Sequence record: OU509535.1
Length of the DNA: 64,000 bases
Reading direction: 5' to 3' (one strand)
Position 1 is the stretch's first letter, and every line of letters starts with the position of its first letter. The notes below the pieces were generated by a model. The model worked only from the letters and a program-made list of their open reading frames with translations. It searched no databases and had not been told where the DNA came from. Shown here piece after piece: positions 28,931 through 64,000 of this stretch. A program made the position numbers and the translations under genes.

Positions 28931-28960
28931 TTGAATAAACATTTCTCCTTGTGATATAAT
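28931..28960 (+). promoter_or_regulatory. sigma70-type promoter
   Basis: TTGAAT-18 nt-TATAAT with extended TG. Confidence 0.6.
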
Positions 28961-48825: not shown

Positions 48826-48834
48826 TGATATAAT
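48826..48834 (+). promoter_or_regulatory. Extended -10 promoter for nadM-nadV
   Basis: TG-a-TATAAT. Confidence 0.5.
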
Positions 48835-55561: not shown

Positions 55562-55597
55562 AAAAATGGTAGTACTGGTTAAAGTACTACCATTTTT
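55562..55597 (+). terminator. Intrinsic terminator built on two AGTACT sites
   Basis: AAAAATGGTAGTACT-ggttaa-AGTACTACCATTTTT, 15-bp stem. Confidence 0.85.
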
Positions 55598-55624
55598 ATA
55601 TAAAGGGATTTTTATATAAAGGGA
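55593..55624 (+). repeat. 16-bp tandem direct repeat at endonuclease gene boundary
   Basis: TTTTTATATAAAGGGA x2 (55593-55608, 55609-55624). Confidence 0.85.
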
Positions 55625-55629
55625 TTTTT

Positions 55630-61992: not shown

Positions 61993-62013
61993 TAAATAGT
62001 TTTTAACAAACAA

Positions 62014-62132
62014 GAAAGTACTGTCACCGTGCATCTGGGTAAAATCAGTATAAGTCCGTAAAGCACAATGCCAATACTCAACAATCTCCCTACTCCTTGA
62101 GATCTACCAAAGTTGAGGGTGGTAGTACTTTC
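62014..62132 (+). ncRNA. Candidate ~120-nt structured RNA
   Basis: 15-bp closing stem with two G-U pairs plus internal stems (see findings). Confidence 0.55.
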
Positions 62133-62142
62133 ACCTTTTTAG

Positions 62143-62394
62143 ATGAGAAACATTATGATTTTATTAATTATTACTACAGTACTGTTAGGATTATTCAATT
62201 GCTGGATTTATTCAAGAATTGAAAAGAAAGAAGGATATTGCTTTCATAGTACAAAAGATGGTCAATTGGTTTCAATGTTTAGTTTAGAAACCCCATCAAT
62301 TTGTAAATTCTTTATTCTTTTACAATTCATCCCGTTTGTTAATATTGTTTTCGCACTTTTATATTTCGTAGATATTCTTAATGGACATTTATAA
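62143..62394 (+). CDS. Small membrane protein
   Basis: Two hydrophobic segments. Confidence 0.65.
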   Translation: MRNIMILLIITTVLLGLFNCWIYSRIEKKEGYCFHSTKDGQLVSMFSLETPSICKFFILLQFIPFVNIVFALLYFVDILNGHL

Positions 62395-63050
62395 TGAATA
62401 TTAAAACAACCGCAGATAAGTACTGGTTCATTATGAACCACCCAAAGTTTTTAAATAAAAATTTCATCACACCAAAAATTGAAATTGAACCACATAACGT
62501 ATGTCCACAAACCAACAGAATTGAACCGTATGAATATTTGAATACAAAAGTCCAGTACTGGATTGAATTTTTTATCCCAGTACATGAGGATGGAAAGTGG
62601 GATATTGCACATGATTACAAACATGATTGTGGTGGTGATACAATAGATGAAGCAATTGACTGCTTATACAATTCAGTACTAAATGAATATGGAAATTATA
62701 CACAAGAAGAATTAGACAAAAAAGAAGATGAAGTATATGATTACAAAAAATTCAAGGTTGGTGGTGCAACAATGTCATATATTTTATCTAAAATTCATGA
62801 AGACCTGTTTGAATACGCAAATGATAAAATTGTAACAGATGAAGAAGCAGAACCCTATAATAACAACACAGTTGGTTATTATGAAAACAAAATTAAAGAA
62901 TTAAAAGGAACTTTAAATTCATTAATCGAATTCAAAAGAAATTCACCAAAAGAAATGCACAAAGTAATTGACAAAGACATAAAAAACGTAGAACATGACA
63001 TTTTTGCGAATGAAATGAGTATTAAATTTATGGTGGATTTGGATCTATGA
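62394..63050 (+). CDS. Hypothetical protein
   Basis: TAATG overlap, 218 aa. Confidence 0.75.
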   Translation: MNIKTTADKYWFIMNHPKFLNKNFITPKIEIEPHNVCPQTNRIEPYEYLNTKVQYWIEFFIPVHEDGKWDIAHDYKHDCGGDTIDEAIDCLYNSVLNEYGNYTQEELDKKEDEVYDYKKFKVGGATMSYILSKIHEDLFEYANDKIVTDEEAEPYNNNTVGYYENKIKELKGTLNSLIEFKRNSPKEMHKVIDKDIKNVEHDIFANEMSIKFMVDLDL

Positions 63051-63415
63051 ATAAAGATCTTTCAAAATTAGTTGAAGACCTGCGGCAGTTGCCGAAAGTT
63101 GAACAAGTTGGGTCGTTTAAACGTTTTTTGGTTATTGCACGTGCATTAGATAAAAAGGGACGTGTACTTAGTACCAAAACTAATTCATACACACAAACAC
63201 ATCCAGTACAGAAGAAGTTTGCAGTTAAGGCTGGACGGTGTGAAGCTGTATGGCTCCATGCAGAAATTCGTTGTTTGTTAGCTGCAAGAAAAGATGTTCA
63301 TACATTACTAATTGCCAGAATTAACAAAGAAGGTCTTCCTGTTCCCGCAAAGCCATGTTCTGTTTGTGAACTGGCTATAAAAGAATATGGTGTAAAAAGG
63401 GTGATTTATACATGA
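63047..63415 (+). CDS. Cytidine/dCMP-deaminase-fold protein
   Basis: HAEIRCL and PCSVC Zn motifs. Confidence 0.8.
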   Translation: MNKDLSKLVEDLRQLPKVEQVGSFKRFLVIARALDKKGRVLSTKTNSYTQTHPVQKKFAVKAGRCEAVWLHAEIRCLLAARKDVHTLLIARINKEGLPVPAKPCSVCELAIKEYGVKRVIYT

Positions 63416-63585
63416 AAAATATTTTTAAAAAAGAATATGATGGTGAAAGCCTTTGTGATATTCAACGAGATGTTGTTGAAGCATTCAGTACAGTATTCAA
63501 TCCAGAAATGATTGATATTCCAGTCGATGAATATGGATTCCAAGAAGGTACATTTGTTGTAAGTATTAAATGGAAGCCAGAATAA
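63412..63585 (+). CDS. Small phage protein (57 aa, not in ORF track)
   Basis: ATGA overlap; MKNIFKKEYDGESLCDIQRD...GFQEGTFVVSIKWKPE*. Confidence 0.7.
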   Translation: MKNIFKKEYDGESLCDIQRDVVEAFSTVFNPEMIDIPVDEYGFQEGTFVVSIKWKPE

Positions 63586-63713
63586 TGCGTGATCTTATTA
63601 TGTTCTTTTCTGCAATCATAGGACTATGTACTTATTATTTTTCCAATCATTATATTATAGCTATGGTATTTGCAATTATATATATTGCACTTTACAGTAC
63701 TGACGACGAATAA
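63585..63713 (+). CDS. Small two-TM protein (42 aa, not in ORF track)
   Basis: TAATG overlap; hydrophobic; ends at terminator. Confidence 0.55.
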   Translation: MRDLIMFFSAIIGLCTYYFSNHYIIAMVFAIIYIALYSTDDE

Positions 63714-63735
63714 AAGCACCCCAGTGGTGCTTTTT
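63712..63735 (+). terminator. Intrinsic terminator
   Basis: AAAAGCACC-ccagt-GGTGCTTTT. Confidence 0.8.
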
Positions 63736-63770
63736 GTATTTGTACAAAATATAATCTAAGTGACTTTTTA

Positions 63771-63812
63771 TTGATTTAAATCAAGAATAAAATCACCTTT
63801 TAGTGATATAAT
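63771..63812 (+). promoter_or_regulatory. FNR-box (class II) promoter of nrdD
   Basis: TTGAT-ttaa-ATCAA at 63771-63784; TG-a-TATAAT at 63804-63812; box centre at -41.5. Confidence 0.75.
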
Positions 63813-63867
63813 ATGTTACGTAGCATTTAAATAAATCTACCACATAATAAAAAATCAAGGAAGAAAA

Positions 63868-64000
63868 ATGAATTCAAATAAATTATATGAAGATATTGAA
63901 AATTTTATTAATAATACAAATAAAGATATTACTACTGAAAATGCTAATAAAGATGCCAAAGTAGTTAATACACATAGAGATTTATTTGCTGGTATCCTTT
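63868..64000 (+). CDS. nrdD: Anaerobic ribonucleoside-triphosphate reductase, N-terminus (truncated by window end)
   Basis: AAGGA SD; MNSNKLYEDIENFINNTNKDITTENANKDAKVVNTHRDLFAGIL matches T4-type NrdD start (NKD...ENANKD...RDL.AGI). Confidence 0.85.
   Translation, partial: MNSNKLYEDIENFINNTNKDITTENANKDAKVVNTHRDLFAGIL

Follow-up and report, generated by a model that had tools for sequence, protein, structure and literature searches.

The window analysed here, a stretch of 64,000 nt from sequence record OU509535.1, ends within the regulatory region and the 5' end of a phage gene for a class III anaerobic ribonucleotide reductase, nrdD. Window positions 62000-64000 correspond to positions 124000-126000 of OU509535.1 (100% match), a Klebsiella pneumoniae phage record of 347,546 bp describing a RaK2/K64-1-like, Alcyoneusvirus-type jumbo phage. 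RaK2, K64-1, Muenster, KP13-7 and other Klebsiella Alcyoneusvirus jumbo phages match the same segment at 95.5-98.5%. We reassembled the full genome from 18 pieces of the public record; its GC content is 32%, and it carries about 490 ORFs, almost all on a single strand. An earlier note on this DNA had predicted a facultatively anaerobic proteobacterial host, in agreement with the closest records, which name Klebsiella pneumoniae, a facultative anaerobe.

The features of the locus follow one another on the plus strand. The last small ORF of the upstream gene block (63586..63713 in the ORF list) encodes a predicted membrane protein, in line with the annotation of its homologue in Muenster as a putative membrane protein. 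The stop codon of this ORF extends into the first bases of an intrinsic terminator, a hairpin with a T run that a terminator scan places at 63712..63734 (-14.6 kcal/mol, z -4.3). The terminator is followed by the palindrome TTGATTTAAATCAA at 63771-63784 (centre 63777.5, no strand assigned), which matches all 10 specified positions of the FNR consensus box TTGAT-N4-ATCAA. An insulating upstream terminator and the sequence TTGAT-TTAA-ATCAA at exactly these positions had both been proposed by the earlier note, and both are present, the box as a perfect match. Then come an extended -10 element, TGaTATAAT (63804..63812), a late-type TAAATA element (63828..63833) and a ribosome binding site, AAGGAAG (63857..63863), whose GGA column is conserved before the ATG. 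The nrdD gene starts at 63868 and runs past the end of the window (63868..64000). A terminator hairpin upstream of the box is also found in 121Q, A4, Turkey5, Hallingskeid and Munch. No Rfam family came near its gathering score in 63500-64000.

The identification of the downstream ORF as NrdD, already made from the window, is secured by the full record, where the protein has 601 aa and an end-to-end match to the Pfam NRDD family (PF13597, E 1e-167). It also matches the glycyl-radical domain PF01228 and has the residues that are invariant in phage NrdD proteins, including the Zn-ribbon cysteines and the RRxxGY glycyl-radical motif. The operon reads nrdD, a grcA/yfiD-like gene, a DUF4326 gene and nrdG, the last encoding the radical-SAM activase (PF13353, E 4e-52), and is followed by a convergent tail-fibre gene. 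A class I (aerobic) NrdA is encoded elsewhere in the phage genome. A search for NrdR boxes gave a best match with 5 mismatches, no better than that of 29% of random windows.

The second gene of the operon encodes an autonomous glycyl-radical protein of the GrcA/YfiD type (120 aa, record positions 127747-128109), although NrdD retains a glycyl-radical domain of its own; the small protein may serve as a spare part for the oxygen-cleaved enzyme. The grcA-like gene is present in Muenster, RCIP0023, A4, Munch, fENko-Kae01 and fHe-Yen9-04 and absent from Hallingskeid and EJP2, in which nrdG directly follows nrdD. In KP13-7 and phiKp_21 the gene after nrdD encodes a longer hypothetical protein (>300 aa) rather than the 120-aa GrcA-like one, which suggests an insertion or a replacement.

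FNR is present in Enterobacterales and binds DNA as a dimer only with an intact [4Fe-4S] cluster, that is, without oxygen. Its consensus box and the rule that activating sites are centred at -41.5 are taken from published work (PMC3688515). A perfect box is expected 0.62 times per 64-kb window, and 48 of 100 shuffled windows contain at least one copy; taken alone in the 64-kb window, the box is not significant. Copies with one mismatch also occur in the window at the chance rate (14 observed versus 14.7 expected). The perfect box is nevertheless the sole copy in the 347,546-bp genome, and among the 76 genome copies with at most one mismatch, just the one at 63771-63784 is intergenic with a -10 element at 29.5 bp or a TAAATA at 50.5 bp. 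The other 75 are almost all in coding sequence and have no promoter partners, and we found no sign of an FNR regulon beyond the nrdD locus. Across the genomes of five distant relatives, perfect boxes do not outnumber a control pattern; four of the five have perfect copies, and in each of these four, one copy precedes nrdD. It is the uniqueness of the box in the genome, its standing as the only intergenic copy with promoter elements at the right distance and its retention in relatives that together place it beyond chance. A near-identical phage in a DNA-like wastewater run carries A>G at 63789, in the spacer between box and -10, and leaves both elements unaltered. The public RNA runs that contain this region are wastewater libraries that are either DNA-like or have patchy contigs at 2-14x, and they gave no indication of where transcripts begin.

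The hexamer TATAAT at 63807-63812, which the earlier note had recognised, lies 29.5 bp from the box centre. With the hexamer at -12..-7 and a predicted +1 at 63819, the box centre falls at -41.5, so the arithmetic of the note was right; from the hexamer position we predict the start of this sigma70-type promoter, P1, at 63818..63820. The note was also correct that there is no canonical -35: the best candidate at a spacing of 16-18 bp, AGAATA, scores 2/6. It had overlooked the TG at 63804-63805, which makes this an extended -10. The class II architecture that it proposed thus has exact geometry in this phage and is incomplete as a picture, because a perfect extended -10 could fire without FNR and P1 may be activator-independent. 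A second TATAAT, at 63750-63755, was considered as a promoter and rejected for want of a usable -35 and because 121Q does not share it. We also note an imperfect palindrome, ATCAC-N6-GTGAT, at 63792-63807, which overlaps the TG of the extended -10; it is kept just within Alcyoneusvirus and not in 121Q, and could be an operator or a coincidence.

The earlier note had suggested conservation upstream of nrdD in related phages as a check. We compared the corresponding regions of 19 named relatives and of additional IMG/VR contigs, together 24 distinct genomes, which span Alcyoneus-, Asterius-, Mimas- and Eneladusvirus, the Munch clade and Erwinia phages and whose NrdD proteins are 64-98% identical to that of the query phage. 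TTGAT-N4-RTCAA is present in 24/24 genomes (a count that ignores kinship) and stands 81-97 nt 5' of the nrdD ATG in all of them. It varies only in N4 and at the least critical half-site position: conservation at the ten specified positions is 97% across 18 unique sequences, and the sole change is A/G beside N4. Over the same 18 sequences, majority fractions are about 0.6 in the 43-nt spacer and in the 30 nt upstream of the box, and pairwise identity between clades is 30-53% in the spacer and 37-70% in the upstream flank. The FNR-specific positions of the box are thus invariant even where NrdD is just 64-73% identical and the DNA around the box is nearly scrambled. No sequence departs from the T by which FNR sites (TTGA) differ from CRP sites (GTGA), and the phage genome encodes no Crp/Fnr-type HTH regulator. 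Given the invariant box, the fixed T of TTGA, the divergent flanks and the lack of a phage-encoded Crp/Fnr HTH, the alignment reads as a clear phylogenetic footprint of an FNR-specificity site. The host on record for one box-bearing member of the family is Xanthomonas, an aerobe, which counts against control by host FNR.

The sigma70 -10 is less constant. It stands at 29.5 bp in Alcyoneus- and Asteriusvirus, Hallingskeid and EJP2 and at 30.5 bp in the Munch clade; the Asteriusvirus relatives have TATAAT without the TG, and their promoters should therefore be weaker. At the same position, Mimas- and Eneladusvirus have TATTTT, TATTAT or nothing, so class II activation cannot be the mechanism of the whole family. 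In these two genera the spacer holds a stable terminator hairpin of 10-12 bp (AAATACCCC...GGGGTATTT; -18.6 kcal/mol, z -4.9) that exactly fills the 43 nt without altering their length, which places the FNR box upstream of the terminator of the preceding gene.

The other invariant block in the alignment of the relatives, overlooked in the earlier note, is the TAAATA at 63828..63833, located 50.5 bp from the box centre and 40 nt 5' of the ATG. Every relative keeps the 50.5 bp between box centre and TAAATA, without any indel, and the interval between TAAATA and the ATG ranges over 31-47. Judged from this alignment, the pair constrained across the family is the box and TAAATA, not the sigma70 -10. 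The sequence TTTAAATA, 40 nt 5' of the nrdD ATG, matches 7/8 positions of a TATAAATA-like late motif. In T4 the late promoter motif TATAAATA spans -13..-6, and Aeh1 uses CTAAATA from -12 (PMC1524935); an ATAAATA late motif and a gp55-type sigma have been predicted for CBB and GAP32 (PMC5259590). Taking TAAATA as -11..-6, as in T4, we would place the start of this late-type promoter, P2, at 63839 by analogy, which puts the FNR box at -61.5, the class I position. Positions near -61 are used by FNR in E. coli, though rarely (PMC3688515). The possibility that TAAATA belongs to an RNA hairpin in the 5' leader was rejected, since such a hairpin would fold weakly (-2.9 kcal/mol, z -1.4) and CBB and GAP32 lack it; we therefore treat the element as part of a promoter.

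The genome provides a context for both candidate promoters. Of all 7-mers upstream of genes in this genome, ATAAATA and CTAAATA show the strongest enrichment (about 6-fold); [A/C]TAAATA is most frequent 30-50 nt 5' of start codons, and most of its copies fall in the late/structural region. Counted on both strands, TAAATA occurs 288 times genome-wide versus about 1,070 copies estimated from base composition, so that it seems to be avoided elsewhere. A gp55-like late sigma is encoded at record positions 228335-229162 (phrog_12791, E 4e-146; phrog_234, E 8e-17). Besides this late-type class, found mostly at 133-335 kb of the record, we recognised an early-type class, TTGACA-N-TATAAT, clustered at 3-48 kb, and a middle-type class, TGAACA(A)AA-N-TGATATAAT, mostly at 160-347 kb; the labels "early" and "middle" are inferred from position and from the CBB paper (PMC5259590). 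Examples of promoter classes within the window lie at 28948-28956 and 48826-48834. The nrdD -10, TGaTATAAT, is the same 9-mer as the -10 of the TGAACA-type (middle) promoters, with the FNR box in place of TGAACA. A sigma70-family ORF is encoded near record position 346241, and since the 9-mer is common to the TGAACA-type promoters, the form of polymerase that reads P1 is uncertain.

Boxes of this kind also recur outside the family. In a set of 80 diverse phage nrdD loci, 11 are preceded by a perfect box, versus 0/320 coding control segments, and a box with at most two mismatches together with a -10-like hexamer at 28.5-30.5 bp is found at 21/80 nrdD loci versus 6/397 controls (all of these counts ignore kinship). 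These loci include rV5-like and T5-like phages. The rV5-like ECO340P2 has a one-mismatch box 29.5 bp from TAGAAT. The T5-like phages have a conserved TTGACTCAGATCA(A/T) 29.5 bp from TATTGT, directly 5' of a strong TTGACA-N17-TATAAT nrdD promoter, and their nrdD leader may combine an FNR-dependent and a constitutive promoter in tandem. In Vibrio phage Quinn, a perfect box precedes nrdD with its centre just 16.5 bp from TATAAT, and its left half doubles as a -35-like TTGATC, a geometry that suggests repression or a different use. No FNR-like box was seen before nrdD in the T4-like, Slopekvirus and Felix-like examples examined.

We propose that the palindrome at 63771-63784 is an operator for the host oxygen sensor FNR. 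Placed in a terminator-insulated intergenic region, it would make transcription of nrdD, the grcA-like gene, the DUF4326 gene and nrdG respond to anoxia, so that the oxygen-labile glycyl-radical reductase would be made mainly when it is able to work, with class I NrdA covering aerobic infection. An oxygen switch between reductases makes sense for a phage that carries both class I NrdA and class III NrdD. In the class II geometry (-41.5), FNR would replace the -35 contact and touch RNA polymerase alpha and sigma70; the same FNR dimer probably also serves the second start near 63839, with a polymerase that carries the phage gp55-like sigma. On the sequence evidence, we consider it likely that the phage places its nrdD operon under host FNR in this way, through a class II promoter plus a probable second one. 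The sequence, its geometry, its uniqueness in the genome, its conservation and the gene content are observed here, and FNR binding, activation, oxygen dependence and both start sites are what we infer.

Several other accounts of the same elements have to be weighed. The most serious is that the TAAATA promoter is the main target of FNR, which would work from -61.5 in a class I-like manner through the alpha C-terminal domain, and that the sigma70 -10 is a lineage-specific extra. This account does not exclude class II activation as the best explanation for this phage, and we regard it as a possibility, albeit a doubtful one. It would explain why the 50.5-bp spacing is kept without indel across an otherwise nearly random spacer, why TAAATA stayed at 50.5 bp in the Munch clade when the -10 shifted to 30.5 bp, and why Mimas- and Eneladusvirus, with a hairpin in the spacer and a poor -10 or none, still keep box and TAAATA. 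It is also in line with [A/C]TAAATA being the top enriched motif upstream of genes, with the gp55-like sigma, with the -13..-6 placement of T4 late motifs (PMC1524935) and with the existence, though rare, of FNR class I sites near -61 (PMC3688515). However, TAAATA is preceded by T, C or G in nrdD leaders but usually by A or C at the other late-type sites, and the late start is placed by analogy with T4. Moreover, we know of no case of a host activator working on a gp55-type holoenzyme, and class I contacts would be hampered by a modification of the alpha subunit such as that made by T4-type phages.

It is unlikely, in our estimate, that the promoter is simply constitutive or phage-programmed, a TGAACA-type promoter with the -10 TGaTATAAT at which the FNR box regulates little. 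The extended -10 and the hexamer are both perfect, the identical 9-mer occurs in at least a dozen TGAACA(A)AA-N-TGATATAAT promoters of the genome, the nrdD -35 region AGAATAAAAT is similar to TGAACAAAAT, and an analogous second promoter class precedes DNA-synthesis genes in CBB and GAP32 (PMC5259590). Yet such a promoter leaves unexplained both the uniqueness of the box in the genome and its invariance across the family, including the Asteriusvirus relatives. More improbable still is that another dimeric protein, host CRP or a phage regulator, binds the palindrome and that the match to FNR is coincidental. TCTAGA, which is the centre of the CRP consensus, does occupy the box centre in many relatives, and hundreds of phage ORFs have no assigned function, but every sequence has TTGA, not the GTGA that CRP needs, and no Crp/Fnr-type HTH is encoded. 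In addition, phage lineages that are unrelated and differ in their gene sets have the motif before nrdD as well, and one site per genome across many genera fits a host factor better. Finally, a functionless chance occurrence in AT-rich DNA might be entertained from the window (0.62 copies expected per 64 kb, 48/100 shuffles with at least one, 32% GC), but it becomes hardly credible for a box that is unique, that lies in the right intergenic region at the right spacings and that is kept where the neighbouring DNA is not; the comparative data contradict it.

The preferred reading, host FNR acting on the nrdD operon from a class II position, has parallels in the host. FNR activates narG, dmsA, nirB, yfiD and other E. 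coli genes from class II promoters (PMC3688515). The phage site resembles these in having TTGAT-N4-ATCAA about 41.5 bp upstream of the start (here a predicted one), a poor or absent -35 and anaerobic functions downstream. It differs in lying in a lytic phage genome, in being a perfect consensus, as sites of this quality are rare in the host, in having a perfect extended -10, owing to which dependence on FNR may be weaker, and in having a phage-type promoter element in fixed register downstream of the box. Another counterpart is nrdDG, which the earlier note had described as FNR-induced in E. coli; it is indeed FNR-activated in E. coli and Salmonella (PMC2892513, PMC4009431). FNR also activates E. 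coli yfiD/grcA, from a site at -40.5, and ChIP shows an FNR peak at nrdD (PMC3688515). Phage and host would thus place the same enzyme pair under the same oxygen sensor, host nrdDG being in addition repressed by NrdR (PMC2892513, PMC4009431). The host nrdDG promoter contains FNR recognition sites and two NrdR boxes, whereas the phage has a single FNR box and no NrdR-like box above background, and the phage operon adds the grcA-like gene and the DUF4326 gene.

A comparable strategy is known from cyanophages, in which Pho boxes recognised by host PhoB likewise put a host stress-sensor site of a lytic phage before a metabolic gene, which is then expressed just in the relevant environment (PMC10976474). 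Regulator, signal and host group differ. The cyanophage Pho boxes are degenerate and poor predictors (PMC10976474), in contrast to the putative phage FNR site, which is perfect and found family-wide. With respect to the second promoter, the invariant TAAATA before nrdD resembles T4-type gp55 late promoters in matching the enriched [A/C]TAAATA of a phage that encodes a gp55-like sigma, and departs from them in the atypical base that precedes it. To our knowledge, no late promoter is coupled to a host activator site at a fixed distance. T4-like phages themselves have an orthologous NrdD (45-47% identical); in the T4-like KIT03, nrdD overlaps the end of gene 49, and there is neither an intergenic region nor an FNR-like box.

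In our judgement, the palindrome at 63771-63784 is very likely a genuine operator for host FNR and an as yet unreported instance of a kind of wiring already known. We found no published report of an FNR site before a phage nrdD in a literature search that was incomplete, so an earlier description may exist. The fixed coupling to a phage late-type promoter is unusual and possibly a new aspect. A bolder reading, which we advance as tentative, is that the coupling of the FNR box to the gp55-like-sigma promoter (-61.5) lets one host sensor gate both the host-sigma and the phage-sigma form of RNA polymerase, and that FNR control of nrdD is recurrent and independently maintained in RaK2-like jumbo, rV5-like and T5-like phages of facultative anaerobes.

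If FNR control is real, a strictly lytic jumbo phage would borrow the sensor of its host to follow the host's oxygen state, instead of running all of its nucleotide-metabolism genes on a fixed expression clock. This would bear on replication in the gut, biofilms and abscesses, where Klebsiella is anoxic, and on phage-therapy testing, which is usually aerobic. The locus would also make a clean test system, with a single perfect site per 350 kb genome, kept across genera, and two candidate promoters in fixed register. Should the TAAATA coupling be real as well, it would reveal a novel mode of cooperation between a host activator and a sigma encoded by a phage.

Two further sequence features of the window are recorded here. 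The 8-bp palindrome CAGTACTG occurs 35 times in the window (e.g. at 1681, 28535, 62177 and 63695) versus 0.43 expected from shuffles, and 246 times genome-wide versus about 3 expected. Conservation of the flanks of the palindrome is weak (TT...AA); 29% of the copies are intergenic, most lie inside genes, and many form the spacer of early promoters (TTGACA-N8-CAGTACTGTATAAT). At 55590-55629, TATATAAAGGGATTTTT occurs twice in direct tandem, a duplication of about 17 nt located right in front of a start codon.
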